Shown here: piece by piece, positions 7,801 to 63,800 of the stretch
Layout: every line of letters starts with the position of its first letter
Numbering within the stretch: position 1 is the first letter of the stretch
Source of the DNA: Klebsormidium nitens
Lineage: Eukaryota > Plantae > Klebsormidiophyceae
Assembly (NCBI GenBank): GCA_000708835.1
Contig: DF237279.1
Location: 1 to 64,000, forward strand
Reading direction: 5' to 3'
DNA: 64,000 nt
Notes under the pieces: generated by a model
Seen by the model: the letters and a program-made list of their open reading frames with translations, nothing else
Database searches by the model: none
What the model was told of the DNA's origin: nothing
Program-made: the position numbers and the translations under genes

Positions 7801-10800
7801 GGTACAGATTCAGCAGGATAAGGAGAGACTGTGGTTCACGCCTGTGACTCGCGTAGCTAGCAGAACGTGAGTGTCTAAACGGTGGCTGACCCGGAGGTTT
7901 GCGATTTGTCCCGGAGCTCCCTTGGCATCCACATGAGGTGGATAGAACAAAAGCTCGCGAAGACTGTGTAACGGAGCAGGAACCACGTCGGGGAATTCAG
8001 GCCGCCTTGGAAAGTCTTTATCCAGCACAACAATGTCAAAGTCAGCACTTGAGCGGGGCTGCATCAAATTCTGATCGTGCCCGGAGAGCAACCCGGTAAA
8101 ACCAGAGTTTCCAACACACAGGGGCTCCACGAACCCAGAAAAATGAGCGGGAGAATGTTTGTTTAAAGTTCGATCCTACCCCAGCAACAGTTTAACATGT
8201 ACGTGCCTTGTATAAAGCACCCCGTTGAATGAGCATACCTTGAACAAGAGCCGCACGGAGGAGTCTGCCCGGCTGTTATTGGACTCGAACTGGCATCAAA
8301 CGTAACTTAAGGATGGGACGTAAAAATGTAAGCTAAGGGCTGTTTGAAGCTCAGATTGTAGCCAATCAGAGCATGTCGTGGAACAAAATTTGAAAGATCA
8401 CCAAATTAAGGGAGCCACTGGCATCCATATCGAAGTCAGGTTTGGGAACTGGAGAGTGCGATTCCAAGTCCATGAACATCATTGCCAGCAAAGCCTGAAC
8501 ACTCCGGCCGAACCGGACCCAAGCTTGCATGTTTGAAGCCGAAGACCTGTGCCTCTCTTTCCCCACGTCGGCACTCCCGGACTCGCACGCCGCCAGTCCG
8601 TGCTGAGTTGGACTTGTTGTGAAGAGCACTGTTTTGATCTGTCCCTTGCGGAACGAGACGCAAACAAAGAGCACGAACGGTTTTCTCCTATCTGACTGCC
8701 GCTGTGGATTCGAACGTTGGATCGTCTACGGTGGCTTCAGGCAGCCGCAGGAATAGAGGCATGAGCGCCCAAGGTTGCTCAAGAGTCTGCCATCACGGCC
8801 GAAGTCAAGAGAGGCCTGAAGAGAATTCGCTCGACGAAAAGAAACCGGCAAGAAGGGGAATACACATCTCGCATCAAAAGACCAGATTCAAGCTGTTGAC
8901 TTGTGTCACTGAGAAGACCGTGTGCAGGACCGATTTAACGTGGGGGGCTGGGAAGAGCGCAAATGTAACGGATGTCTTTGCTCAATGATCATAGCAAACA
9001 GCCGGGAAACCACACAACAAAGTCCACTGAGTTTGGACGCGGAACAACAAATTGCGGGGCGGTCGGAGTAAACGATATCTGCAAACATCAAAGGGGTTTG
9101 ATGAAGGCTTTCCGGAAGCTTTTTTTGTCTACTCCTCGCTCCAAAGCTTGCGCAAAGAGCTCACCGTGATTGTTGTCAATACCCTACTGAGAAGCAATCA
9201 GCGAAAAACATGGCTTCACGAATCCCACCTCATTCACGAGTCCCACCTCAGAATCTCGACACGAATCTTTACGGTGGGATGAGCGACCAGGCGCGCCACG
9301 CCCTCTCAAAGTACCAACGAGAATGCAGAGGATACCCCTAGACGAACGAAGTTCTCTCTAACGATGTGCAGAACGTGCAACCGTAAACCCTGTACATTGC
9401 CAAACAAATAAGCTCCGACGAACTAACCACTGTCGTCCGTTCTAGATACAGCAAAAACTGATTCTGGAAGCCGTACTCATCGTTTGCGTTGGAATCCATC
9501 CCCGGAGCCTAACAATAAAGCCCGAACCGAGTCAAACAAATGCGTCACATGGCTCATTCACGATCTGGGCGGGCATAGCCATATCAAGGCCAAAATTGCA
9601 AATCATGACCACAAGTGATCCAATCATGATACTTACAGCCCAAAAGCTCAGCACGGCTCCAGTAGACAGCACGAAACGAAAGCCCGAAGCTGGACACTCC
9701 ATCACCTTCACACGAAGAAAGGACGTTGCCAGATGCTGACGGTAGTTTGCTGATAGAACGTCAATCCTTGCATTTGATCACATGCCATGATGTGTCTGGG
9801 TGGCTCCGAGTGAACGAAAAGGAGAACTGAGCCCTCAGGTACTCATGTCTTCTCCCGTCCTAGCCTGCCCTGTGACAAGTGGAGCAAGCAACCTGAAAGC
9901 CAATCCTGCAAGACGAAAACCGCAAGCTCTAGTCCAGTATTGGAACACAGTTGCTTCGCCATGCGTGTTCCGCTCCTTCAGGTGTTGCTATGTCAGCAAG
10001 TATGCGAAGAGTTCTGAACAGAGCACAGGCTGTTGAAAGCAGCATATGACGTCACTCTGTAACAGATCACCGAAAAATCAAGATCTCAGTCATCGACATC
10101 GTCATTGTTGAAAGATGCCCACCCCTTATTGTAGAGGTTACAAAGACGGAATCTGCCTAATATATACTACAACGCTTTTACCCGCGGAGCTGTTAGAGAA
10201 ACGGGTCCTAGGACACCAGGAAAATAAGCAGAGCCCTCGGACTCAACAAGTGGGTGGTCAAACGAAAGGAGGACCGCTGGTTAAAATCCCTTCTCCTTGT
10301 GCGAAGTTGCCTACAGGATCACAACGCCATGCAGACCAAAACTTCTATGATGGCAACAGATCTTGAGATTCGAGCCTACTGGCTCTGGATTGTGACACCA
10401 TACTTCTGGGGGCTGACCGCCCAATACGATCGATACCCCCCTGAAGTCAGTCGTCCTGGCCGATCGAGCGACTGGGAGTTGTGCCCGGGGCTTATAGCTG
10501 AAAGCTCTCTTCAAAAAGAACTATAGACCGGGAAGCATATTGGACTGACAAAACCTGGAAACAAACACCTCCGGACTGAGAAAGCAATGTGCATATGGGC
10601 ACAATGCCGCTTTCAAGTGCTGTCTGCGGCGAAGAAGATGGGAGCCAAATGTGCAAGCGACAAGAAGTTACACCTTTGCAACGAGTTGGCAACGACTCGG
10701 ACGCTCGGAAAAAGCGACCGTGAGCGAACACACTGGTCGAACCGCTGGTGCAAACGGTGCACGAGAAGGATTTATTAGCGACGAAAAGCTATTCATCAGA

Positions 10801-24584: not shown

Positions 24585-27500
24585 TCAATGCGCACTTCCG
24601 TTGGCCGACTTGACCCCATTCGCCACCGCAAGTCCCCTCCCTTCCGTCTCCTCCTCTTCCGATTGCTTGTCTTTCCGAAGACCCCAGATGCGTATCGTGT
24701 GGTCGTCGGAAGCCGACGCAAACATGTGGGGGTTGGTAGGATTCCAGCTCACGGCGTTCACGGTGCCGGAGTGGCCCGGAAGGACTTCGAGCAAGTCGCC
24801 CGTGCCGCGGTGCCATATGTACACCTGAATCGGAGACGCGTCAATGTCAACTTGGTGATATGTGTGATTTCATCGTTGTTGAGACCACGGCAGATGTAGC
24901 TATCCTCGAGAATTTCAGCTGCCCAGTGGCCCGGGAGGACTTCGCACGAGTCGCCTGGGTCGCGGTACCATATGTACACCTGAAACGGAAACGCGTAAAT
25001 GTCAGAAGAGCAATCTGGTGACGTCGTTGCTGTTGAGACCGTGCCCATGTAGCATCCTGAACAGGTCAGTTGTGCCCGAGTCGCCTGGGGAAACTTTGAA
25101 GCCAAGCGCATGTGCCGCAGTGCCATATGTACACCTGAAAAGCGAAGAGTCGTTATCAGAACCTGAATCAGAACCCAAGGCGTAAGACTCGCAAGCCTCG
25201 CCGGAAGGCCCGGAACCGTGGACTTACACTTACCGCAAATGTCGCGAGCAGGCCCACGCTGAGCAAACGGAGTTCTCAACGTGCACGATTAAGAATCCTT
25301 TTTGCCACACCCAGATTTCCAGAAACGGCCGATGAGAGTCCTCCTGAAATACTACTTTACCCAGAATGTAAACTAAGAAGACACGAGGGCTGGTTCCAAG
25401 TTCGCGGCCGGAGGCAAACGCAGCCAAATTGCGTGTCCTGCTTCACAAGTCCTAACCCTCACATCTACTAGATGGACAAACGAATCTTTCCCTGACCCCA
25501 GAGCGAGATCAGGGCACCTAGGATGTGGAAGCGCCAGTTCCTTCTCAGTCGGAGTACATCTGGTCCAAATCCGGGCTCAAAGAAGGCCCCGAACTCCTTT
25601 GCTCCTGGAACCTCACCTGAGAGTCTTCGCTCCCACTGACAATGAACTTCTGCGCGCTACCCCCAAAGCACGAGCGGATGACGTAGCGCCCCTGCTTCTG
25701 GCCCTTGTAGCGGATGGCGGGCTTCTGCGGAAGCCGGCTGGCCCCCAAGTCCCACAGATGGATCACCTGGCACAAGGGGGCAGGTGATTGGCAAAAGCCG
25801 GAACAAAGTTAGCAACTCTAAGTGATCTGGACCTCACTGTCAGCCTGAATATTGCTCGCTTCACCAAACGACGTTCTTAACGAGAGCGCCTCACTTGACA
25901 CGGTTCAGTGCTCAAGGTGGTTTCTGAAAACAAAGCAGGTCCGCAACCTGCAGGCGGACCCTCACCTTTGGCTACCTGCCAGAAACAAGAGTACTCAAAA
26001 GCTCGCACGTATTTGCAAAATATCTGAAGGTCAATGTTGCTATAAAAGGACACCTGACATGCCTTGCTGGTCAAACCTGGTCGTCTCCCTCCTAATCTTT
26101 TGACGTGAGCTGGGATTGCTGCCAAGGACTGGGCGGAGCACTGGCTTCCAAATGCACACTGAAACGACTCGTGCAGATCAGAGGCAGATACCAGTCTTCC
26201 TTACCTGGCTACTCAGGTTGACGAGCAGGTAACGGCTGTCCCCTGAGATGCACAGGCTCGTGATGCTCTCCACCTCGTCAATGGTCTGTTCCGAGCGATC
26301 AGCGAAGCGGTAGATGCGAATCTTCTTCTCGCTGCAAATGCTGATCTGCAAAACCGAACAGAAGGGGCTCAGTCGTTAAGGCAATCGGCACTTTCTCGAC
26401 GATTGCAGTGCAATTCGGACCAAAGGTCGGTGCTTCTGTTGGAGGAATAGCAATTTGATCGATGGGTCTTCTTGCTCGGTACGGAGAGAGGTTGGAGATT
26501 CACAAAAGCGTAACAAACCTTGATAAGACGCTGAGCAAATGGCTGGTTGAGGATGCAAGAAGGAAACGTATGGTTTGGCAGCGAATGCCTTCGAAAAAGC
26601 GGACAGGACATGCCGTAGGGATCAGAGAACGTGCAGTCTTGATAAAAGAAAAACCGTAAGTATCCGACGGCTGTACTTCCATACATCGCTGCCAATCTAG
26701 GCAATAGTGGCGAAGGAGACGACTCGCCAAGCGTCCAGTAAGTACGAGAATCAGGGGAGCGTAGGGGAAAGCTCTTACTGAAAACGCCAGTCCAAGAGAA
26801 GGAGCTTAGCGCGCTGGTGTTAGGACACTGCCTGAATGAAGCTTGCACCTTCATAATATCGATGAGGGCAAAAACGCACTCTAACAAAACAAACCGACGC
26901 CTCACCATCTGCGCCCCGTCGCTGCTAATTGCCAGGTCGTTGATCCTCGCGCCCGCCCACTGCTCCAGTTCGTTCCCGTCGATGTCCCACATGAACGTAC
27001 ATTTATCCACCCCCCCGGAAACGAACCGCCGCCCGTCCGGGAACCACGCGCACGCGGTCACGGGGTCCGCGTGCTTATCATAAGTGCGCCGCAGCTTGCC
27101 GGATAGCGTATCCCACAGCTTGATCTTGTTGTCGTTGCCGCACGTCAGGATGAGCGAGTCGTCGGGCGACCAGGCGACGAACGAGAGTGGCTTGGCGTGG
27201 CCTTGGAGGACGTGCAGAACTTGGACGTCGTTTGCCGCGTGCACCTGAAAGGACAAAAATAGTTACTGGGTTACTCAAGTAGGCAAGCTGAGCAACGTGC
27301 GGAGACGTTGGCGTTTCGCAGAAAGGTGTGACTTCTGGGATTCTTTTGCGGCCCGTGTCTGGAAAGAATCTGGAAGGCCAGACTTAGGAGAGCTTAAAGG
27401 AGTGCAACTAAAGGAGCTCTGCTGTCCCGCAAAGCTTGACGTACTCTGCCGCGTGCACCTGGCGAAGGGGTTGGGGGCGAGCTTTGATTAGCATCGGATG

Positions 27501-47382: not shown

Positions 47383-48894
47383 TCCTGCAAGTCCTGTGTT
47401 AATGAATAAGGCCTACTGCAAAGTAGAAGAAAGCTCCCAAAGCTCGTCAAGTAGAGGGACGGAACTCGTAGACGAATTGCTTCAAGTCAAGTACGGCAAA
47501 AGAGTGCTCTGCATCTTAGGACTACTGTGTTTGACCTGGGCCGCCAACAGTGATCGATGTTGATAAAAGCCGGGGCCCAGTAACAGCGGCATACTAATGC
47601 TTGCAACTGTACTAAACTTCAAAACTAAGGATTTTTTGACGTGGTTGAAATGGCCGTACGGTATGCTCCACCGGGTTTTAGGGTCAGTTTGCCTGGCCCG
47701 CATCGCGTTTCTAGGCCACCTAGTGATCCTTTGTCACGTTGACACACAGCGTACTAGACACCGTCAATCTCAATCTCGGTTTGGCTTTGATCTTAGTCTG
47801 GCTTTAATCAATGATTAAGTTGCATGTGGACATAGCCGGTACTGGTATGCCTTGCAATGCTACGGGCCCCCCTGGTAATGGTACACCAGCAATTTCCAGT
47901 TAGGTCCATTTCATAAACATCTTATCAGATTCATTGATCGTGAGGTCCGACGGGCCTCGCCATGCACGTACTCTATCATTTGCCGCACATGATATGCCGC
48001 TGTGCACAGTGACAGCGCCTTGAGTCGATCCGACGTACCAGTACGTATAATTAGATACAGATCAAAGCTAGGATAAACGGAACCTAAGTCAATCGATCCA
48101 GTGACCATTCTAAGCAGATCCCGGTGACAGTGACTAGCTAGCTACGCTAATTTCGATGAGATGTGCGGCCCGGCGCGGGCCCAAATGGCCGCCGTGTACG
48201 TGGTCAATGGACCCCGCAGCATACTGTACTATAGACTTTGTCAATCAATGATCTATATGCGCATGCATGTAGTCACGTTGAGTCGATCAAAGCTCAGACA
48301 CGCTTCCGAAGTTCAGTACGCTTGCGATACAAACGAGGCCGGAAATGATTGGACTGCGAATATCCGACTTGTACAGCATGCAATCTGCAAGAATATGCCC
48401 AGATACTGCCAGCTGACGCGTATAGCTAGCCACTGCAATTGGCGATATCCAAGATGGCGCTGCACTGCACTTGATCATGCCAGGGCTGCACTATCTAATG
48501 CAGCACACCTATGCGCAATCGCCTGCCGTCAATCCGCTTCTCAAAGAACATCGCGGTTCCAACCGTGCACGATTTTGATTAGTAGCAGCGCGTGGCCCGC
48601 GCTCTCAGGCGGCACAATTGGCCCGAATTGAACACGTGCCACACGGGTGGCATCTCACTATCATGGTCAATCACACTTGCTCAGTTCGAAACCAATGATA
48701 ACTGACTTGCAAACGCACACTGAACCTTACGGGACGGTTGAACTCTAATGTTTTGAGATAGGTTCAAGGTACTTGACTGCACTGTGCCAGAGAGCTCTTG
48801 CCAAGTTTAAGCTAGCCATAAGGCCATTTTCTTATTTGGAATCACGAGAACACATCTAAGGGGGTACAAAAGGATCAATCGTATATTATCGTGT

Positions 48895-49342
48895 CTACAT
48901 GCCTTGCAGGCTGTTGAAGAGTGCCGTACAGCAAAGGATATGTTCTTCCTGGTTCCAGTGATCTTCCAGGACTCGTTGATTTTTGGAGACAAACTCCTCG
49001 ATCAGCACAAAGTCCCTGAACCGAATGCTCCCGGTGTTTCCGATTATCCTTGGGTTATCCTCAATCGTCACCGTGAACCACTTACCAACATCTTTCGAGT
49101 TTCCATAACCCTGCGATACTCTTAACTTCGGGACATCTGTTCGCTCGTTCTTCAGGCTGATCCAGACGGACATAGGAAGTCCAGTGACTTGACAAGACAC
49201 GTTCGTCATCGTAAAAGGATCCACTCCCTTGTCAGGAAAAGCGAAGTCGTCTTCAACGACAATATCGTCTTCGTCGTCGTAAATGGAATGACAGGGAGTC
49301 TTCGGCTGTGTCTTCATCAGATGAAGTGTCAAAATTACTCTC
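48895..49342 (-). CDS. Hypothetical protein resembling a bacterial/phage small-protein family (F-x-M-x-N...TGLP...W-I-S; DUF4160-like C-terminus)
   Basis: Open frame with ATG at 49317 and stop at 48895-48897. Core sequence: FTMTNVSCQVTGLPMSVWISLKNERTDVPKLRVSQGYGNSKDVGKWFTVTIEDNPRIIGNTGSIRFRDFVLIEEFVSKNQRVLEDHWN. The family resemblance is from recall, not from a search. A good acceptor (ctgactgcccttgcag) lies at 49343-49345. Confidence 0.65.
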
Positions 49343-51867
49343 CTGCAAGGGCAGTCAGAAACGAAACAATGTCGAAAGGGCACGGCACCAACTTTGGAAC
49401 TTTGGCTTCATATGTTAATCAGCTTCACTTGTGACGCGCGATAGTCACGCGCAGGACACAGCAAAGACTGGCTTACGCGTAACCTGCTAGCTGTTCTCGT
49501 TAAGATGTCGAGAAATCGACTACATGCGGAGTCAGGAAAGCCTGTGTTCCTCTCGGGCGCTGATTCAATTGAAGTAGGGCAGACGCGGGGATTCATAATG
49601 TCCACAAATTCTTAAACAGATTCTCAAAGTTCGAAACGAAGAGGCCGGTAATCGATGGCGACGTCGTCCAATTCTTTTTTATTGATTGATGAACACCTCT
49701 TTGTGGTGTACGGTGTCATACTACGTCCTCGACATACACGGTACGGTAGTCGTTACGTGAGTTGAGAATACACGTTTGGTTCCTAGGACCGTTGATTGCT
49801 TAGCTTCAACTTTTGAAATAGGAATCTTTGACAAGACACGGGCCTGGAGGAAGAAACTCACATCTTCGTCGTTGTATCCGTGGGTTCCACATTGGACCTC
49901 TGCTCTCGTGGCTTGCTCGCTTCTCCTCATGAGCTGCAGAAAGGCGAGGTGCTTTTGAGGTGTGTTAACGGAAGGCTATGAAGAGACACTTGAGAGTCGG
50001 CCTGCTTCGAGAGGTAAAGGGCCCAACGCTGCAAGACTCGTCTGCGATTTTGCTCAAACTTCCGAGGATTCGTTCTGGGGCAGGTGCTGGCTGACTAATG
50101 CAGACTGCAAATCAGCTTGGATCCCAGCTAATTAAACTCCTGTCACGATTGATGCATGAGTTTCACCAATATCACTAGCAAGGAGCTGACGAAAGAGTAG
50201 GCTGAAACTTAAGTTTCAGTACCTTTCGTTGCAAAAGCTAGTCTCCCATAGCCGGTTCCTTGTTGCCAAGCCGCCGGCGCTGCTGCCGACTTTCACAATC
50301 TGGTGCGGAAAGCCTAGAAGCGACCGGACAGGGAGGCTTCGACAATGCATCAAGGAGCTCCTCTTTGAAAGCTGTAGTGACCTGTGAACCAGGAGGTAAG
50401 AAAGCTCGCAGTCAGTGTTAAAGTGCTAGCGGTATTGGTCAACGGTGGAATCGATATCGGATGCAACATCACTCATCTGCAAGTTGCAGTGGTGTGCTCT
50501 GATTTTGCAGTGGCCAGTAGTGAGTGTTTTGTAGTGCTCAGTACATATATCAGATATACACAGCTACCAAACTTGGATGCATGCCCACTGTGTGCACAGA
50601 TTACTACTAGGCTGACCGGCTATATGTGACACGTTCTGCGCATGTTCGCCAGCAGTTTTTTTTGAGCTTACTCTTCACAGGCTTTTAGACAAAGCCTGCA
50701 AAAGGTACGTCCCCAGAACTCCCGGCTGGAAAAAGCACACCAGGTTCTTGGAACCCTCACTCTAGCTCAGATACAATTTTTTGAAAAGTCAGAGTATCGC
50801 GAGCTGACATTTCAGCCAGTGAATATTTGCAGTGTTCTACGACAGCTTGCTGAAAGGACTCACAATGCCGGCTCTGCCAGCTGTGCCCGCGGTGCTGCTG
50901 CCGCATACATGGGCTTTGTTCAGGAGCTGGATCAAGTGTCCTGCTATGTTGTGGTGACCGTTGCATGTATGACGGAGCAACACACTGAAGAACAAGTCTG
51001 GAAGTTTTCAGACTCCTGTAAAATGCAAGTCCCTGAGTTATTTGCTGCAGCTCGAGCTCCCCCCCTGATCAGAATGCAGTCAGAGAGCAAATATCAGCAA
51101 TGGCTCACACACGGCCATGTTAACACATGATGGCCTTGCATTACAGCATTGCTTTACAGCACCACAAAGTAGTCTCCGCGTTAATCAACGTTTGCTGAGC
51201 TTTGCATATGATCATGCTCTGAATCAAGATTGTATATACATTTCTCTGCAAACGAGAAATCAGGTTTGAAAGCAGTCTGATCAAACCGTCTGATCAACTC
51301 GAAGTGCTCCACGCGAGAGATTGGCTGATGTCAGCCAGCGGCCGCCCATCGAATGACCGTCGATAAAATGTATTGGAGCCTTTTGAGCCGTAGATAAACA
51401 GGGTGAGTTGGTTGTTAGTATGCGAGTTCGGCCGAAATGCATGTGACGAAACGCTCTGAACAAGCGTGCCTGACCCCCATGTCATTGTGAACAGACCCTA
51501 TGAGTAGTGCCATCTTCAAAGTGTGCTGACAAATGAATCTACAGTGATGGCCGCGGCCAATGAGGGCGAACGTCATTCTCACATGCGGAAATGCTCCTTC
51601 TCACAAGCTGCTAAAGTCCGATAAGAGGACGAAAAGAATAATCTGAACAAGGCCATGATCAGCTAGCTGGAGGAAACATCCCTGGAGCTGAGAAGAGGGG
51701 ACGCTTGCAGAGGGGCCGGAATGGAAAGCCCCATGTAAGAGATATCTAGCGAACGACATAAGGTATGCTTGTCTGCATGACTGACACTGCATAGCATTAA
51801 CAGATAGGCCCATAACTCCCTCGCCCGCATCCATTCACTTAGGAACCGTTGAGTTGCTCAGGTCTTA

Positions 51868-54800
51868 ATGGCGCCCGCCAATCAACGCCCGGCTTTCAAC
51901 CTCCCAGATCTCCGCTGGCTTTCTCCTCCCAAATGGAAACCCCCAGAACGAAATACACAACCGGCCCTGGACCAGGGCACCAAACCCTTAAGCGAAAATG
52001 CGACCAGAAAAATCCAGGGTGCTACGGAACCAGCGCAGTCAAGAACACCGGAGAAAGGGAGCCCGCCGCCGCGGCAAAGGAGGCTGTGGGACTCGTTTGC
52101 TGCCAGGGGGGAGAGCTTGGTGCCCTTCCGGCAGAGGAATGGGACCCCCCTGGAAAATGAAAATGGTGACGGAACAGGGAAAATGGAGCCCGCAAAAATC
52201 AATGCTGGAAACAGCATTCCTGTGCGCTGGCCAGTGCCAGCTGTCCCAATGTCGCTAGAGCCGGGGGCAGCACTGGAGGATACGATGACTGCAGCGTCTG
52301 ATGTAGCGCTTGCGAGTGCGGAGAAGAGCATGGGTCCAGCGCTCAAAGACGAGCTATGCATGCAAGCGATCGATGAGACACAGTCGTCAGCAAAACCACT
52401 GTCCCCCCCAGCTCAGCCATTTGAGGTCAAGCTCCTAGTTCGGGAAAGAAAGGTGCCAGCTGTCCAGGTTTTGCCCCCCGGAACAGCCCCATCTGTCATA
52501 GTCCCAGCCCCACTCGCGGTGCCCCCCCCCTCAGCAGAGCCTCCCCTCACCCCCCCGGAAGTTATCGCTCGCGGCCGCTTTTTTTCTCCCCCCTGCGCTG
52601 CGCGGGACAGAGTTCTCCTTTCCCCCAGCCTGCGCGTGGGGACTACTGCTCTGCGCGGGCGAGTCGCTGACCTCATCAGCCCTGGGCGGCCCTTTCGGAG
52701 CCCTCGTAGCAAGTTTTTCTCGCCCCCCAGGTAAAGTTTTATCTCCTTTCTAAATATCTCTATCATCAGTGGTATCAGCATATCAGAGAAGAGCTTGCAA
52801 CTTTTGCTTTCCTTGGATCCCCTTTTTGTGCATTAGTATTATGTTGCAGAACTTGCCTCTAGCTGGCAAACAAAAAGCTCGTTCGAATGTGATATAAGTG
52901 GTCAGCACACACGAACGCGACTATGATTTGCAATTCGAATCAATAAACAGAAGATACAGACATGAAAGTACAGCTAAGTCCAGAGAAAGATGCAAGATAC
53001 GAGGGGGCCAAGCTGGTGGTTACATGTTGCCACCTTCAAGCCCTGTTTACCGCCGCTCTCTTCTATGGATAGAAGGAGTTCTTTATCAAAAACTGATCGT
53101 TATCCTCTTCGCCCTCTGCCATCCAATCAGGTACCGTGGAAAGCTCCTTAAGAAGAATGCGGCGGGAGGCAGTGGGGAGGAAGTGGTCACCGGCAGCTTG
53201 GCTCTAGGTTGCAGCTCAGGCCCGTTCCAGGGGAGTGCAAAAACGGGCGGTCAGACAGAGGGGAATCGGGTGCGGTTTTGGTGGTTGAAGGAACGGGCAG
53301 AGTTGGGCCGTGGTTGTACAGTGGGTGAAGAGAGTTCTGGGGGCCAAGCTGAGGCGCAGAGGGAAAGTTCTGCCACGGAAAGGGAACGAGTAATTTTTTC
53401 ATGGGGGAAGGGTTCCTTCTCGCCAGACTGCCAAACAGCCAAGGATCCGGAGGGGCTGTTTGCGAGGCACGACCGCAAAGAAACAAGGACCTATGATGAG
53501 TCTAACACCGAGGTTCCTCTTGAGACTGGAGCAGAACGTGTTGGTGGGCGCATGGTGTCAAACGACGTGCCAAGCCCTGCGGCTCGTACTCAGCTTCCAA
53601 CGTCGACCCCGACCCCCCTCTTCCTTGACACAGCCACAGCTGGAGAGGCTGCTAACAGAGCTGCATCACAAAGTTGGTATCGAGCTGAGCAGGAGAGCGA
53701 GATGGAGGATGGAGACACCCAGTCTGTGGGCAGTACGGAAAGTCCCGTGAAATTTGGAGGTCTCCTCGACGGCGCTCTCGGAAAGCTCGAAACGCTGGCG
53801 CTCGCGTGTAGGCTGGAGGATCTGAAGCTGGCAGGGGGAGCCAACCGGGCAGCGGAGGAGAACGGAATGGAGGTTGGTTTAGAGACCGGGGAAAGTGGTC
53901 GGGGCGACAAAGCGGGGTGGGAGAAGGCTGACTTTAAGATTGAAAAGACTAAACGGGGCCACAATGCGGGGACAGAAGAGGCGGTGTCCGAAACTGGGGG
54001 TTTAGATGGGGATGAGGAAGTTGCTTTGAAACTCCAGGGTGTGAAAACGGACGCTGACATCAGGGTGCGTGCGAACAAGACGAGGCGACCTCGAGACAAA
54101 CAGAACGGGGTTGGTGGACGAAAAAACGGGGGTGGCGGGTCGCAAGCCGGTCCGCAAAGTCTTCCTGTTCCAGCGAAAGTTTGTAAGGACCCTCCGGGCA
54201 CAGAGGACGAGCCGATTCTTGTAAAGAATTCTCAACAGACACAGCAAAGGATAAGCGCTGCCGATCCGGCGCTCGGCCTCGGTTTTCAGCACAGACGGGG
54301 CATCGCGTTTGCTGATGCGGACGAGAAGTCGGACAGGAGTTTGGACACAGGATCAGTGGTCGCGTCCGCTGAAGCCGTGCCCCAAGACCGGGCAGCCAGT
54401 TCTGGTCGGTCGGAAGAGCTGGCGGGTTTTGAGAGCGGGGTCCCTGGGATTGCAAAAGCAGCGCCAGTGCCGCCGAACGGGCAGCTCAAGACGGCGGCTG
54501 ATGGACCGAGGAACACACAGCGGTCTGCGAATGCTACAGAAGCGTCTGTGGACGGTTCCAAAGAGTCGGCAGAGGATAAATCGGGGAATTTGGACGGCGT
54601 TTCGGACCTTATCCCAAACCCTGCAGACGGTTCAACGGACAGAGAGAGCGCACCCTCCTCTTTGTGGGGTGGTGCGAGGGGCGGGTCAGAGCCCCCCAAA
54701 CAGAAAACGGACGGCAAAGCTGAGCTCACGGACGCGTCCGAGCAGGGGATCCCTTCCGGTTCGGCTGAGGAGAGCGTTGCGGTCACTGGGGTTTCAATAA

Positions 54801-57800
54801 GTTTGTGCGGTCGGGCGGAGATGGTGAGTACGAGAGGTTTCGAACAGGCGGCAACTGATGGGCAGCTCGAAGAAACGGCACTTTTGGGTAAACAAAAGCT
54901 GTCAGCTGCAGAAGGGATGACTCAGCAGACCGCAACCCAGCTTCCAGTTTCGGGCTACCCGCTGGGCGCTGCATTGGGAGCCAGATTCGAAGGGAATCGG
55001 GATGATCCGGATGATCTGGAACGCTGTGGAGGGTTGGAAGAACAGCCGTCAGGTAGTGAGAATGCCTTCGAGGGTGACCGTTCAGTGAAAGAAAGCACGG
55101 GTCTGTGGATCGGCGATGAAGGACCAGTGGAGCAGGCGATGGCGAGCGGAGAGTTGGAGAGTGGGGAGCGGAGAGAAAACCTAGAGATGGGCGCAAGGAC
55201 GGATGGAGGGTTGGAGTTTAGAGATCAAATGGAAGGAATAGTAGAGAAGGGCAGAGGATCGGAAGTAAACCCAGCGAAGGTTGAACGGACGGAACCAGAA
55301 GTAGAGAGGGGAGAATCAAAAGGTGGAGACCGGAAGAGAGGGGAAAGGGCCGAAGGGGAGCTAGATCGAGACAAACAGAAGAGAGGACTTGAACTAGAGA
55401 GGGGAGAGCCCACGCAGCAGAGCCTGGAAGACCTTGCGCAACTAGACTGGGACAGCATTCTGTCCGGCGACGTCGACTCGTGCGTCCGGCACCTGTTGGA
55501 CAGTCCGCAGTGTCAGCGACGGTCGTGGGCCTCTGGCGAGGGGACCGCTTCGCGACCAATATCGCCCCCCTGGAAAGATCGCGTTCGGGCCTCCGCCGCC
55601 GACGGGGGCCTCGCTTCCCCGCCTGCTTCACCCCCCTGGAAAACAAATCCACCAGAGATGCGTCTTAGAGAGGGCAGTCCGGGTGCAACGAACAAGGGAC
55701 CAAGCGGGGGGTCCGATTCTCGGCCATCATCGCCCCCCCGGAAAGATCCAGACCCGACTATTGCCTCAGGCTGGGGGGCAATTTCCCGCCCCGGTTCCCC
55801 CCTCTTCAGAAGCCAAAGTCTCCCGACGGATCCTACTTCGGTCGGCAGCCCAGGCGCGGCGTCGCTGGAGCCGGGTGGGGGGCTACATTCCCTGCTTGGT
55901 TCGCCCCCCTGGAGCGTGCAAAACTTCCCGGAGGTAAACCTTTTGGTGGGGAGCCCTGGGGCGGCGAGGGACGCGTTCCGTCGGTGGACCGTTCCGGGGA
56001 GCCCTGGTGTGCCCAAACCGACGGAAACAGCAGGTAAACACCGTAATATTATGTAGCGATTAGATTCTTCCAGTGTTACAGCACTTTTGTACACCCAGTC
56101 ACTTTAGAAAAGGGAGGAAAGCTCACAATTAGTCAAAATCAGCTATCACCAGATTTGGTTGTGTTTTCCTAACTTATTCGTCTATTATACTTCAAAACCT
56201 TCTTGTCTTCCGATATCAGCAGCTTGTTCGAATATAGTTGCAATGAAGAGGACTCTTTGTATTCACCTGCACAAAAATTCTAAGCACACGACAATCTGCT
56301 CCGCACCACAACCCTCTCTAACTGCCATACTAAGCCATTCCGTCCTCGTCAATTTCCTTATTGATCTTCAACATTGTTGACATGTAGAGTTTCTTTCATT
56401 CGCAGGCGTGAGGTTTAGGGAGACGCGGGACGTTGGGTTCCTGAGGGCGGTGGCTGGTTGGGAACCGGGGCTGGGCAGAAAGGCGGGAGCGGAACGGAGC
56501 GGAAGGGCAAGAGCAGATTCCGGCGGAAATGCCAGAGCAGAGCAAGAGTTGGGGCCCGAGGCCGGCGGTGTGACAGGACCACAACAGAGCGGAACAGTTA
56601 AGGCGAATTTGGATCCGTTAGTGAAAGCGGATTACGGCGCAGAACTAGTAACTAGAAGGGCGGAAAGCTCGGCAGCAATGGATGTTCCGATGGGAAGCGA
56701 GGCGGAACGAGCGGATTCTGAGGTAGGGGCTGATTGGAGATGAAAGCTTCTTATTTAAGTCGAAGCTTTTCCTCGCTTTCTTTCTTGCTATTCTACTGAT
56801 TGCTATCTCGGAATCGGAATCTGCGCACTCTTGTATCTGCTTCTCTTTACTATTGCTTCTTCTTCCGAGTCCCAAAGGGAGCTACAGACCGCAGCTTTAG
56901 ACGGCTTCTTTGCGAACGATGCCAACGCGACATCGTTCCTCTACACGACCACAGACTTTCTGAGGGAGGCTGGCAGGAGCCGATTCTTGTACACGCCATA
57001 TCACGAGGTACTATGGCAAATCTTCTCTGAGCATCTCAGAGATGGTTCCCCAAATTGCATAAGGTCTGCGCCCTAAAACCCTGGGGTTTGCGCAAAATGG
57101 TTTACGTTGCTTCTTGGCAGGACACGTCGCCGGCGGCTCCTGAATCCGCAGAAACGGAACCGGACGTGGAGGAGTTTTCCAGCGGCGTTGAGCCGCCACG
57201 CAAGCGGCGGGACGCGGAGAGAAGAAGCTCGGTGAGCAGAGGACACGTCTCTGTACGAGTTGAGATCGGGAGTTTGAGAAGTGCCGGATCACCTTTATGT
57301 CAAAAAGCACCTCCACGGATCTGGCTCAAGGGAGCCAGTTGAAACCCGTTTTTCAGTACTTTTTGTAAGCTAACGAACATGATCACGTTTGAGTCTTCAC
57401 CATCTCAGCTTCTCATGTTGTAATCCAGTCTTGAATACCGCAACAGGATACGAGATTGGAAAAAATCTACAGAAAATCTAAGACGATTACGACCCCGTCA
57501 ACTTCGTCTCTTCGGTTCGTTTCTGAAGTCAGCCACTCACATTCGCAGACATACATGGGCGCATAAAATGGTGAGAACGCGCACATATCGCTGTTCAGGA
57601 AGCAACGAAAGGATACAAGATGGCGCCGCAAGACCTTGGCAAGAGACATGAGCCCTCTCTAATCTTTGCCTTCTAGTTTTAGAGGAGGGTTACTTCTTTC
57701 TCTGTCGGCGGCGTTTCCATCCTAAAGCGGTCTGCACCACATGAAACTTGCAGGTTTCGAACCGATCAAAGCCCCAGACCCCGCAGTTTGAAAACCTCGA

Positions 57801-60800
57801 GACCGTATCCACCCAAAACGTCGAATTGTCGACCTATTTCCTCTCCCCCTCTTACAGAACCACTTGTTCGCCTTTGGCAGCTTCAGCTCAATTTTCTCGG
57901 ACCTTCAAGCTCCAAAACCAGGAACCCAAATGCTTGAATATCTAGTCAGGCTTATTTCCACCAATATCACAGGGTCACTTGTCCCGCATCCGGCGGCTCC
58001 AGTCGCGGCCTTCTTGCACCATTCTAAATACTCGAAACCCTCAAACCCCAAACCCCAAACCACGAAAACTCAGAAAACCGAAACCCTAAATTTCTTATCA
58101 CTAAGCTTTCTCAATGACTCTAATTCACAGGATCACTTGTACCGCCCAGCCGCGGCCCTCCTGCGCCATTTCCAGAACTCCAAAAACCTCAAACCTTAAA
58201 CCACGAAAACTCAGAAAACCAAAACCCTAAATTCCTTATCACTAATCCAGGATCATTTGTCACGCCCCCGGCGGCTACAGCCGCGGCCCTCCTGCGCCGC
58301 CCTCCTCCTGCCCTGCGCGCCGTACGATGAGGACGGGTGCGCCGAAGATCACGCCACGTGGCAGCCTGAGAAAGTCGCCGCCAACCGCCTCCGCATTTTA
58401 GTCGGGCCGTACGCCGACAAGGAGGGCATTCACACCGACGGCTCGGAGGGGCTGAGCCCCGAGGTGACGCCGCGGTGTGAAACGGCGCCTGGCAGGCGGT
58501 TCTTCAGGGACACGGACGCTCCTGAGAGGGTTTCCAAGTAAGGCCGACACGATTTTGAGGGCGGGTCGGAAGCTGCTCTGCTCATCGCAGAGTAACATGT
58601 GCTTCGTCTACTTTCTACGAGGCCAAAGCATTTTCATGAGCTTACGATCGGGGCTGCAGCTATGATTACACCGTTTCAACATCCTGACACGAAGGTTTAT
58701 TTTGACCGGCTTGATTCAAGCTTTGCAAGCGAAGATTGATTGTGAAAAACACCTTAAGAAACTCCTAGTGCTGTGCTAACGTTGTTCCTTCTAGTGTTCT
58801 CAATTGGTAACAAACTGACGGCGTGATTCAGGCGATGTAAAAGCTTTCGACTCCCTTCACTTTTCCCTCAACTTGGTCTTTCCGTTCATCCTTGCGCACT
58901 CAGCCCTCATTTTTCGATAGCTGGAACCATTAGGCTCCCGTTGTTCTGACGTGACTTGCTTGTTTTCCTATCCAAACAATGTTGTATGCTTTTCGAGAAT
59001 ATTATGTTTCCAACAACTTGCTATCGTTTTTATGCCATGTTTCCTTCTTCTCAATGACAGCGCTTCACGACAAGTTAACCTCTGATGTCACCCCTCTCTT
59101 CTTCACAGGCCTTCAAAGCTGTCCTTCCCCGTCGTCTCATCCGAACCGGCAGTCTCCAACGCCCTTTCCGCAACGGAAACGGGAACTCTGCGCCCGACGG
59201 AAGTCCTGTGCTCTGCGGACTATTCCCCCTCAGTGGAAGTCCGATCCTCAAGGGACGCGGAAATCGTCCGCTCATCGGACGTCCGTTCCTCAAGGGACGC
59301 GGACACGCTCGGCCCATTGGACGTCCGTTCCTCACCGGACGCTGAGACCCGGCGCTCATCGGACCTGGGCCAGCGCTCTGCGGACGCTTTCCCTCCAGCG
59401 GACGTCCGTTCCTCAAGGGACGCGGAAACCCTTGGCTCGCCGGACGTCCGTTTCTCAACGGAATCGGAAACCAGTCGCTCGTTGGACGTCCGCTCCTTCC
59501 CTGGCCCAGATACTCGGCACTCATCGGACATCCTGCGCTCTGCGGGCGCTCTCTTCTCAGCGGACGTCAGCTCCTGTGCGGACGCAGAAACTCTAAACTC
59601 ACCGGACGCAACAACTCTGCAGTCAGCGGACGCGTTACCCGCAGAGGACCCAGCCAGTCCCGTTCTGACAGCCGCCACAACTGTGGCTCCCCCGGAGAAC
59701 TTCACCGGTCAGATTTCTGAAGCGGGGCTGTCGAGCCAAGCCTGGGGAGAGTCAACCGACCAAGATTCTACCGGAAAGAGACTAACCGAGTCAGTTACGG
59801 TAGAACCCACCGACCGGGTTTGTCTTGAGGAAGGGCCTTCTCGGCCAGTTTCTGGGGGAATGATCGACCAAAGTTCTGCCGGGAAGAAACCATTTGGGTC
59901 GGCCTCGGCGGAAAGCACCGGCCCGGACTCTGGTGAAGAGAGTCCGTTCGAGTCAACCTCGCTGAACGGCACCGCCCGAGATTCCGCCGGAATAGAGCTG
60001 CCTCGGTCTTCCTCCGCGGAAAGCACCGACCAGGACTTTGTTGAAGCGATTCCGTTCCAATCAGCATCCGTCGAACGTACCGCCGATAGTTTCGTCGAAA
60101 GTGAGCTGCTTCGTTCAGTCTCGGAAGAGTTCGTCGAGCGCTTGTCTTCGGGAGATTGGACTGGAAAGAACTGGGCGATCGGCGAAATCTTGGAGCGCTT
60201 CCGCGTTCAAAGGCGGGCGGGGAGCCGTTTCCCGGTCGCTCGACGGAACAACCGGGCATCAGAGGGATCCCTCTCGAGCTTGAGCTCTGCTGCTAACCGG
60301 GGCAGAAGCGCCCGGGTCAGTGACCCGGGCTCTGAGGACCTAGATCGAGGCGACACGGGGGCGAAAACGCACGACGAGCGAGCACGGGCGAGACAGCTTA
60401 CGGGCCAGCCGGTCGCTCAACGTAACCGGGCGGCTGAGGGATCCCTCTCTAGCTTGAGCTCTGCTCGCGACCAGGGCGAGAGTGCCCGGCTCAGTCACCC
60501 GAGCGCTTCGGAAGTGGCTGCGGGCGACTCAGAGGCAAACTTCCAGGAGGAGCGGACACCGACGGTAACGAACCAGCCCGAGAAAACTAGAGCGGGGATC
60601 AGCGACTCCTTGGGTAGTGCGGAAAAGGCCTCGGTTTGCGAGAAGCCATGCTCGGGAGGATCTCCAGCCACCAGAGAACTAGAGGGGGAAGAAGTGACTC
60701 CGAGTTTGGAACCTTCCGAAAATTTCGTCTCTCAAGTGAGCTTGGTCCTTCGGGCTGGAAGAGGAGGCGTTTTTGGTGAAGACGAACGGACGCCGAGAAG

Positions 60801-63800
60801 CCAAGAGATGGGTGAAGAAGGGGGTGCTTCTGTGCTGTCCGGAGAAACCGGAAGCGGTCCCGAATGGGTTTGCGAGGGGGAGCTGTTGGGGGCCGATGAA
60901 GGTACGCCGGAAAGCGGAAAGCGGCAAATGAAAATTGCTCATCCAGGGAGTGAAGAGATGGCAGAGCTACAAAACAGTGATGGAGAATTAGAAAGGGTGG
61001 AGATGACAACGCCACGCGGCAGAACGGGGGATCCGGAGAGAACCCTGCGCGCGCTTGGAACAGAGAGCGCGGACGAGAACGAGTTGGCCGGCGGCGATGA
61101 ACCGATGGGACACGTGGCGAGAGCGGAGCACGCTTACGTAGGTTCCATAAAGGGCCAAAATGCCAGTGGTCGGGAGGAAGAGACCGGTCACTCTGCTGCG
61201 GAGGAGAGAGACAGGGAGGTGACCGGGGGAGTGCTACCAGGGGCGGTAATGGAAGGACGGGAGGCACGACTGGGGATTGAATTGGGGAAGGCCGGGAACG
61301 GCGCGAAAGGGGCGGATCGGAGCGTTCCGGTCGCAGTAGAAAAAGCAGCGGAACTACGAAGGACGGAGGCGGCCGGGAAGAACGCGACAGCGGCGGAGCG
61401 GAGCGTTCCGGTCGCAGTAAATGCAGCGGAACTTCAAAGGGCGAAACAGGCGGAAACGGAACTGATAAAGGAGGTCTGGGTTGCGCTTTCGCCGCGAATC
61501 TGGGAACCACCCGCGGGACTGGTGCCAGGTCCAGGAGACGAACTGGAGGTGTTCGAGTTTGAGGCCTCGGACGGCGAACTGGAGGGAACGGAACGGGTTC
61601 CGGCGGAACCTGAAGTGGAAAAAGCCAGCGGAAATGGAAGCATCGTCCAGGAATCTGGTGAGGGAGCCAGGCTGGACGAACCCTGTTTGGAGATGAACGA
61701 CTTGGGCGGACTCAGTGCAAACGGTAGCAGTTTAGACGGAACGATTGTGGACGGAGTCATTGTGGGCGAAACCAGTGCGGGCGGAAGCAGTGTGGGCGGA
61801 AGCAGTGTGGACGGAACCAGTGGGGACGGTGGAGGCAGGGACGGAACGGAGCCGGACGGAATCGAGCTGGACGGACCAAGCCTAGACAGGACCAATTTGG
61901 ACCGAAAGAGGTTGGACGAACCAAAAGTGGACGGAACCGGCCTGGACGGAAACAGTCCGGACGGAACAGCTTTCGGCGGATCCGGCTTGGACGGAACCGA
62001 ACTGGACGGAACCAGTCTGAGGCAAACCAGCCTGGACAGCACCACTTTGGACGTCAGATCGGACGAAACGAGCTCAACCATAGCCAACGCGACCGGAACT
62101 GGTTTGGGCGGAACCAGTTTGGACGGAAACAGCCACGAAGAAGTCACTCGAAAAGGGAACGTGTCCAGCAGAAGCGGGCCGGTATCCGACGGAATGTCCT
62201 TGTTGCCGAAGCTGAAGTTGGGAGCGCGCGCAGAGAAAACGGCTGTGCCTGCGCGGACGGCAGAACGACGTTCCGCCGCGGAAGCGGAAGCTCCGGCCTT
62301 CGCAGGGGAGCTGCCGGAATTACGAGCAGCTCTGAAGCAGGTCAAGACGCGTGTGGCTAGCAGCCCGGAGCGCGCGAAGGTGAGACTCCTGACCGCGGTG
62401 CAGAGAAAGTCTTGAGGTTATGACATGATAAGATGTTTGTCCTATGGAGGCGTGTAGACCATTCAAAACTGCATGTCATGAGGGTTCAAAAGAAGGACAC
62501 GCAGTCACAGCTTTCGTGAAGACTAGTTTTGGTTTGGAATATGTTTATAGGAGGAATGGGAGATTGACTGAAAGTCAGGCTGTAGAATACTGGCTGGAGT
62601 CTCTGAGAGCAGCGCTTTATTGGAAGATAACAATGGGCAAAGTCTTTTCTGCAACGGCGTAAGGGATTTGGTTTGCTTGGACGATGCAAACTAGCTGAAG
62701 TCATCTCTTACCACTTTGAAGAGAGTCATCTTTTATGCCCCTTTCGGTGTCCAGGCTTAAGCATTCCGTGTAGAAAGGTTCGAAAAGCAGACATTGACTA
62801 TCTATTTCTTTGCACACGTCTCCAAACATCCCGCTTGAGAGTTCACAGCACGACAACCCGATAACCCACGAGCCAAAACACGTCGCCTATCAAACCATAA
62901 CCGATCTCTTCCCGGTATCGTTCCCCAGGTCAAGTCCCCGCGAAAGCGGAACGGCTTCGCTGCCACCTCTCTCGTCAACGGGCGCGCCGTCCTCGGCACC
63001 ACCCTCTCCCTGGCCCGGAAACAGGAGATTGCTGACGTCAGCGTGGACTCGTTTTTGAACTGGGACTTCATCGTCGGGGGCGAAGAAAGCGGCGGAGAGG
63101 GGGCTGTCGTTGCTGCTTCAGAATCGGTCTGTGGCGCTGGTTTGGAGATTGGGAATGCTGGTGCTTTAGAATCGGTCTCTGGCAGGGGTTTGGAAGTCGG
63201 TGCTTTGCAACCGGGTTCTGAAGGTGGATTGGAATTGGGTTCTGGCGGTTGTGTGGAAGGCGTCACGGAAGGCAAACCAAAGACAGTCACAGCCGATGGT
63301 TTTAGATCGGTCACAGCGGGGGTCTCAGAGGCCGACGTTACGGTCAGCGGTGGAGGATCGGTCACGGCCAGTGGTTCAGAGACGGCTTCTAAAGGAGAGG
63401 GAGAATTGGTTTTCGCCAGCGGGTTCAACTCCGCTTCAGCCCCCGGTTTAGAATCAGCCTCTGTCAATAGTGTAGATTCTGGTTTTGAGGGCGACGTAGA
63501 GCCGGGCTCTGGCAGTGGCTTCGCCGCGGCCAGCACTCCGGGGCTCCAGGAGATGTACGCGGGTGAGCTAGCTAATTCTGCCGCGTACACACCGGAACGG
63601 AAGGGAGTTGCCGACAATCGAGCGGTGCAAGGCGCGGCGGAAAAGTCTGGCGGATTCTCGCTAATGACCGAGCTCCATTGTGCACCCTTGGAGGGAAGTC
63701 CGGCGGAACCGCAACTCGGTCTAGTTGGAGACGAGGGGACGGAAAGCGGAACGGAAAGCGCGCGTGCTGGGGCCAGCTCTCACCGACCGGAATCTGCTGT

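Follow-up and report, generated by a model that had tools for sequence, protein, structure and literature searches.

The DUF4160 domain is best known as DhiT, the toxin of the DhiTA pair of Dickeya dadantii 3937, which arrests growth upon overexpression and the target of which is unknown (PMC8198452); it is also an effector domain of the Menshen NsnC proteins (PMC12065111). The wider superfamily is prokaryotic and phage-borne, and its members are often paired with DUF2442 (PMC12065111, PMC8198452). Here, we analyse a distant relative encoded by the alga Klebsormidium nitens, in a window of 64,000 nucleotides (positions 1 to 64,000 of contig DF237279.1, assembly GCA_000708835.1). A first-pass annotation, made by a model from the DNA letters, had singled out positions 48895-49933, which include the minus-strand open reading frame (ORF) 48895-49383, of 162 codons, and proposed that they code for a small bacterial or phage-like protein wired into host splicing, a candidate for horizontal transfer. 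The locus is a transcribed and spliced gene, with the domain contained in its last exon. Taken as a whole, the data are probably best explained by an algal gene that derives from an old transfer, has been kept by purifying selection and carries reading frame deficits peculiar to K. nitens.

The core motif quoted in the first-pass annotation is present in the translation of this ORF and is reproduced by the consensus of the family; for the domain, it can be written as TGLPM...P-x-L/I-R/K-V...Y-G...F-x-V-T-I-E-D-x-P...G...D...N...L...W. Hypothetical proteins of phages and DUF4160 came up in a search with a protein language model. A profile combining the window domain with its orthologue (described below) retrieved, in an exhaustive HMMER search, 322 proteins at E ≤ 1e-3, of which 61 reach E ≤ 1e-10; they align over domain positions of about 2 to 95. 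Most are 100-130 residues long and some have two or three tandem domains. Together with the phage contexts described below, they bear out the resemblance to hypothetical proteins of bacteria and phages that had been noted for the core. The window protein has all the conserved columns of the family, i.e. TGLP, P31, V35, P57, G61, D70, N81, L85 and W89. Among the phage and bacterial members P0003, P0011, P0013, P0018, P0099 and P0129 are proteins in which the domain is repeated two or three times in tandem.

Even with E values of up to 10 allowed, the window protein itself has no match in Pfam, PHROGs or NCBIfam, and neither the 162-residue ORF nor the 108-residue domain matches PF13711 (DUF4160; gathering threshold 23 bits) at that level. 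Seven of 52 relatives do match PF13711, one of them above the Pfam threshold; the two-domain protein P0003 scores 26.9 bits (cutoff 23) over profile positions 26-64, and P0032 aligns to positions 12-65. In the eukaryotic clade to which the window protein belongs (see below), two of 31 members match, at E ≥ 0.019. The family phrog_14333 is matched by four of the 52 relatives, with a best E of 1.7e-5. The likeness to DUF4160 proposed for the C-terminus therefore stands as a distant one, seen in these relatives and, less clearly, in the predicted fold, and does not extend to a match of the window protein itself. Like DUF4160 and DhiT, the window family has a beta-strand, a strand with the motif P-x-x-V, a third strand and two helices ending in N...L...W. 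It differs by about 20 extra N-terminal residues (F-x-M-x-N...TGLPM), and the window gene differs by being spliced, monocistronic and eukaryotic, with a presequence-like leader and no DUF2442 partner.

Structure prediction with AlphaFold2 and a 122-sequence alignment gave a model with a predicted local distance difference test score (pLDDT) of 93.1, consisting of four short strands followed by three helices; it replaced a model made with two sequences only (pLDDT 39.6). Bacterial and phage clusters of the Atlas superimpose on it with template modelling scores (TM-scores) of 0.84-0.86, and the uncultured Caudovirales proteins A0A6J5LAD3 and A0A6J5LA28 of BFVD with 0.87 and 0.81, respectively, and root-mean-square deviations (rmsd) of 1.8-2.0. 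For an Atlas cluster composed of 98% DUF4160 and 97% DUF2442 proteins, the TM-score is 0.58 (by query), with 87 residues aligned and an rmsd of 3.3, both sides being predicted models. In another Atlas protein the fold is fused to RepA_C, a plasmid replication protein (TM-score 0.81). Searches of the PDB by sequence, with Foldseek and, more widely, with VIA-align gave no convincing solved relative, the best score in VIA-align being Z 4.2 for the integron cassette protein 3fy6; no solved structure matches DUF4160 either (PMC12065111). The domain is a compact alpha/beta unit of about 105 residues, and the unnamed family of small proteins to which it belongs forms a divergent branch within the DUF4160 (DhiT toxin) superfamily.

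The gene was delineated by placing Logan contigs of the RNA-type runs X5 and X6 on positions 47900-51800, with the DNA run X1 as a control. It has at least four exons on the minus strand, and one RNA contig joins all four:

50864-50943 (seen part), minus strand: exon 1; record 9 of the X6 RNA contigs covers 50862-50943 and is joined to exon 2.
50382-50863, minus strand: intron 1; joint at 50379/50862, cut +2, GT..AG (CT..AC on the plus strand).
50223-50381, minus strand: exon 2, 159 nt; the presequence-like frame goes on and ends in phase 2.
49934-50222, minus strand: intron 2; joint at 49933/50223, skipping 289 positions and ending in CT..AC on the plus strand.
49862-49933, minus strand: exon 3, internal, 72 nt; bounded by RNA contig joints, with a GTGAGT donor.
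49343-49861, minus strand: intron 3; joint at 49341/49861, cut +1, in two runs (X5 and X6).
48777-49342, minus strand: exon 4; the reading frame occupies 448 nt and ends with the stop at 48897-48895, followed by 3' untranslated region to at least 48777.
48898-49221, minus strand: the 108-residue DUF4160-like domain, wholly within exon 4, the last exon.

The three joints are absent from the DNA run, in which a contig spans the gene. Over 48777-49341, the RNA contigs agree with exon 4 with 0 mismatches and 0 gaps. Four runs labelled as the same organism contain 34-44% of the words of 48700-50100, approximately the share expected from the exons, and transcripts were found in three independent studies. 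The 72-bp exon and its splicing to 49342 had been predicted; two RNA-type contigs from two runs, with GT..AG ends, confirm the donor and the acceptor, while the position of the exon had to be corrected, as it is internal and preceded by two more exons. The wiring into host splicing is thus real, and the locus is a genuine, transcribed, spliced nuclear gene of K. nitens.

Some RNA-type contigs lie wholly inside intron 3 (49636-49818) and intron 2 (49951-50183). The contigs carry no strand, and these could come from retained introns, pre-mRNA, antisense transcripts or DNA carry-over. The plus-strand ORFs over 48895-49383 are short and match no family, searches of Rfam and for repeats around the gene gave no RNA family and no flanking repeats, and no further copies of the domain were found within the window.

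A word-index search of 5.8 billion proteins returned only one close relative, P0001, which is 76% identical. It is encoded on a 26-kb contig of run SRR23617307 (locus L001), where the neighbours are the same as in the window: an ORF of about 289 residues and two of about 1000. The exons of this syntenic orthologue measure 47 (from the ATG), 160, 72 and 450 nt and make up an uninterrupted ORF of 242 codons plus stop. For the comparison, reading frames were derived exon by exon, whereas the family searches and folding used the single-exon domain. The ATG of exon 1 (50910-50908 in the window) and the 15 codons following it are conserved between the two loci. Exon 2 contains two indels within its aligned coding part, both of 3 nt, and has a ratio of nonsynonymous to synonymous substitutions (dN/dS) of 0.32 at a dS of 1.06. 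In the 324 nt of the domain, the differences between the two genes number 18, 15 and 42 at codon positions 1, 2 and 3, with dN 0.16, dS 0.97 and dN/dS 0.17 (0.12 for the first 92 codons). The codon position pattern and the dN/dS value indicate that the domain frame is coding and not a chance ORF, and by this measure the domain is under purifying selection. A relative-rate count, polarised with other clade members, assigns nine derived changes in the domain to the window and 11 to the orthologue; the K. nitens domain therefore carries no sign of relaxed constraint.

Exon 3 behaves differently. Both the exon and the GTGAGT donor have been conserved at L001 (intron 3 is poorly conserved), but the proportions of synonymous and nonsynonymous differences (pS and pN) are 0.26 and 0.25, with a dN/dS of 0.92, while pS is 0.54-0.57 in the other exons. 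Conservation of its nucleotides in the absence of a codon pattern may reflect a splicing or regulatory signal.

Compared to the orthologue, the K. nitens gene has two small deficits. Exon 2 is 1 nt short (159 versus 160 nt), and exon 4 lacks a net 2 nt somewhere in 49282-49304, as judged from the alignment with L001, so that neither the acidic leader nor the domain is any longer in the ancestral frame of exon 3. An assembly error behind the frame problem was ruled out, the RNA contigs being identical to the genome, with no gaps, at both sites. As the two deficits total 3 nt, the exon-1 ATG and the domain still share one frame in the spliced mRNA. Between them, exon 3 is read one base off its ancestral frame and contains a single TGA, at 49929-49927, which overlaps an ATG (ATGA). 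Read from this ATG, the ancestral frame of exon 3 runs into the 2-nt deficit and terminates at 49255-49253. Downstream of the TGA, an ATG is first encountered across the junction of exons 3 and 4, formed by A49863 and T49862 with G49342. It is in frame with the domain, as had been foreseen, and opens a 149-codon ORF that contains the whole domain and, at 49317-49315, a further in-frame methionine; the acidic stretch noted ahead of the domain is present in this translation. The junction ATG is a by-product of the two lineage-specific deficits and not an ancestral start; the orthologue reads from the upstream ATG through all four exons. Exon 3 being 72 nt long, an mRNA without it would have an ORF of 217 codons with no interruption; no such mRNA was seen in the contigs, although Logan contigs drop rare variants.

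How the domain is produced can be read in three ways. Our preferred reading, held tentatively, is that it is made from the junction ATG or from the methionine nine codons later. It is rather unlikely, though a serious contender, that the domain is not made because the gene has recently died, and less likely still that it is made from an mRNA without exon 3, as part of the 217-residue ORF. In the second case, the locus would be a transcribed but recently inactivated pseudogene, in which the deficits broke the ancestral 242-residue ORF and the junction ATG arose fortuitously. This would fit the in-frame TGA in exon 3, the stop met by the ancestral exon-3 frame, the intact state of the orthologue, and an observed mRNA that has several upstream ATGs and an upstream ORF of about 70 codons. 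It fits less well with an intact domain ORF at a pairwise dN/dS of 0.17, with the lack of an excess of derived changes on the K. nitens branch, with deficits that add up to a codon and keep exon 1 and the domain in one frame, or with transcripts in three independent studies.

The ATG in exon 1 starts a presequence-like frame rich in alanine, arginine and serine. At both Klebsormidium loci, exons 1 and 2 are nearly free of acidic residues, coding for 8-10 arginines and lysines versus 1-3 aspartates and glutamates over 67-68 residues, and the peptide looks like an organelle-targeting presequence in composition. Basic N-terminal extensions are present in many members of the clade, some of them being read-through by the gene caller. 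A more speculative proposal, to which we give little credence, is that the algal clade represents a domesticated phage or toxin-fold protein imported into an organelle, and that exon 3 of K. nitens is a stop-carrying cassette exon. If so, including exon 3 would uncouple the presequence from the domain and force initiation at the AUG made by splicing, skipping it would restore a 217-residue protein of presequence and domain, and the production of the toxin-like domain, as well as its location, would depend on splicing. With one orthologue intact and the other carrying a stop-containing exon, the pair is tractable for asking how the gene is expressed.

The non-eukaryotic family members for which contexts were examined sit in jumbo phages or phage-like contigs. 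P0003, which matches the profile of window domain and orthologue with an E of 7e-23, is encoded on a 252.8-kb contig of 26% GC with gp32 and a DEAD helicase, its genes tightly packed on one strand. P0030 is on a contig of 274.8 kb that codes for Gp23, a T4-type capsid protein, and for a prohead protease, and P0017 on a compact one-strand contig with RadC, NUDIX and GIY-YIG genes. With P0030 as the query, the sole match among GenBank phages is a 485-kb uncultured phage, and nothing was found in a collection of bacterial and archaeal genomes; tblastn searches with the window domain gave no match in GenBank phages or PLSDB plasmids. The T4-like jumbo phage contig of P0030 (L011) also contains a HicA toxin gene, at 8875-9117 on the minus strand, about 500 bp from P0030. 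The proteins of jumbo phages and uncultured Caudovirales (A0A6J5LAD3, A0A6J5LA28, phrog_14333, P0003 and P0030) are homologous to the window domain, with a near-identical predicted fold and the conserved columns in common. They differ in being 105-130 residues long without a leader, some having two or three tandem domains, in lacking a two-residue insertion described below, in belonging to another clade and in mostly keeping the histidine of the H-G-P-R-I-K-V motif, for which the window protein has aspartate.

Other relatives are found on eukaryotic contigs. P0002 is a paralogue from the sample of the orthologue and has another copy next to it, the contig also carrying an HPP gene split by introns. 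The nearest named paralogue is P0016 (GAQ81355.1, KFL_000780170) of K. nitens itself, and P0140 and P0173 are Cz01g09210 and Cz01g09230 of the chlorophyte Chromochloris zofingiensis. Several metagenome members, on intron-rich contigs, are accompanied by broken-up genes of clearly eukaryotic type: for Med22, for XRN, for SSRP1 and DNAAF11, for an intron-split adaptin and ILVD, and for NPC1. A tree of 160 rows places the window protein and its eukaryotic relatives in one group of 34 rows, with a support of 86 in the Shimodaira-Hasegawa-like approximate likelihood ratio test (SH-aLRT). In a tree of 74 rows (a quick tree, with SH-aLRT support only), one branch with a support of 92 parts 38 rows from 36; the side of 38 contains all 13 context-checked eukaryotic rows, and the side of 36 the four phage rows. 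Four Klebsormidium copies form a clade (SH-aLRT 95), as do the two of Chromochloris (99). An insertion of two residues after the conserved W-x-Q (a spacing of at least 6) is present in 23 of 27 clade members versus 4 of 95 others, and the window protein has it. Phage relatives do exist, as the first-pass annotation supposed, but the window protein is in a separate clade, in which all 13 members that could be assigned are eukaryotic.

Tandem pairs are common among the eukaryotic members, for instance at 8637-9146 and 9923-10396 of locus L002 and at 1423-2190 and 2279-2827 of locus L012; Cz01g09210 and Cz01g09230 are likewise a tandem pair. KFL_000780170 and the two Chromochloris proteins share the clade and the insertion with the window protein and are also hypothetical proteins, of 160-207 residues with N-terminal extensions. 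They are just 26-37% identical to it over the whole protein and are encoded at other loci, whereas the window locus contains one copy only, which has the stop in exon 3.

The economical reading of this distribution, and the one we infer, is an old transfer from a phage or bacterium to a eukaryotic (algal) lineage, predating the speciation of K. nitens and the Klebsormidium duplications, because the wider DUF4160 superfamily is prokaryotic and phage-borne, and named eukaryotic carriers of the family are very few. An algal or some other eukaryotic lineage would long ago have acquired a phage or bacterial gene, which may then have gained 5' exons, coding for the presequence-like N-terminus rich in arginine, serine and alanine and for the acidic linker. 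It would subsequently have been duplicated within lineages and kept by purifying selection as a stand-alone module without antitoxin.

Several observations weigh against this account as a whole. The window protein fails every curated family model, so that its kinship with DUF4160 is transitive, and it and its orthologue have aspartate in place of His29 of the common H-G-P-R-I-K-V motif. The genomic context was checked for approximately one third of the eukaryotic clade. Because the trees have no root and comprise about 120 columns, the direction of transfer rests on distribution and not on topology. Finally, no form of the K. nitens mRNA was seen other than the one that retains exon 3 and the TGA, and the several upstream ATGs of that form make efficient translation of the domain doubtful.

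The unrooted trees, in which the depth of the eukaryotic clade equals that of many phage clades, would also allow the family to be ancestrally eukaryotic (or algal) and to have been taken up by phages and bacteria. We consider this improbable, given a wider superfamily that is prokaryotic and phage-borne and often associated with DUF2442 (PMC12065111, PMC8198452), the small number of named eukaryotic carriers, and the location of the checked non-eukaryotic members on bacteriophage or phage-like contigs, for which nuclear genes of algae are hardly within reach.

As to function, our best guess, by analogy, is that the domain would be a non-enzymatic or weakly enzymatic binding module kept for a host function, possibly in an organelle of bacterial ancestry. 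It would most likely bind a conserved, possibly organellar (bacterial-type) partner, as is presumed for DUF4160 effector domains; we infer the activity, location and translation start of the protein. That it still acts in the alga as a growth-arresting toxin, as a selfish or defence module like DhiT, is slightly less credible than a eukaryotic origin of the family. Homology to the DhiT/DUF4160 toxin superfamily speaks for it (PMC8198452). However, no DUF2442-like or other antitoxin partner is found nearby: none of the eight ORFs lying within about 1.5 kb on either strand has a Pfam match at E ≤ 0.1, in agreement with the absence of a partner remarked on before. The gene next to that of phage protein P0003 is likewise without a Pfam match, PADLOC gave no match for 52 family members, and the phage members stand alone too. 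Long-term purifying selection on a constitutively transcribed solo gene is not what would be expected of an active toxin either. The suggestion of a domesticated RNase-like module was dropped: nothing supports RNase activity, and the traces of RNase J, a sub-threshold RNase_J_C match of one relative (E 0.022) and a Z of 2.5 to the RNase J C-terminal domain, are noise.

A recent capture of a bacterial or phage toxin gene by K. nitens alone, followed by its wiring to a host exon, is very unlikely. Phage and bacterial homologues exist, and the domain is intronless and lies in the last exon, which speaks for it. On the other hand, there is a syntenic orthologue at a dS of about 1, the four Klebsormidium copies form one clade, the nearest relatives are all eukaryotic and include a chlorophyte, the GC content is host-like and flanking repeats are absent. 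The horizontal transfer proposed at first is thus retained as an old event, and abandoned as a recent one specific to K. nitens. Contamination of the assembly with prokaryotic or phage DNA, for which the homology itself is the sole argument, is refuted by three GT-AG introns confirmed by RNA, a DNA contig spanning the gene, synteny with the flanking long ORFs in a second alga, a WD40 gene in the same window and the host-like GC content.

The eukaryotic clade of this unnamed DUF4160-like family was found in no paper and is not recognised by Pfam. New at the window locus are a structure of four exons that RNA has proven, an orthologue with an intact ORF of 242 codons and the pair of deficits specific to K. 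nitens. The locus reveals a eukaryotic branch of a toxin-related, phage-borne superfamily, in a streptophyte and a chlorophyte alga, with introns, N-terminal leaders, lineage-specific tandem duplication and purifying selection, and offers a concrete case for what a solo toxin-fold domain does after domestication in a eukaryote. Interest is tempered by old gene transfers into algae being common.

Beyond the gene, the plus strand of the window contains two long intronless ORFs, at 52898-56056 (1052 residues) and 59233-62415 (1060 residues), in GC-rich DNA (0.56-0.60). Their products are rich in glycine, glutamate, serine and alanine, have no Pfam match and are unlike each other. A 288-residue ORF (51868-52734, plus strand) lies upstream of the first, and the syntenic ORFs of L001 are of matching size (289, 1001 and 1054 residues). 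On the minus strand, 26369-27256 is an exon coding for WD40 repeats (E 6e-22), confirming that the window contains ordinary eukaryotic genes.

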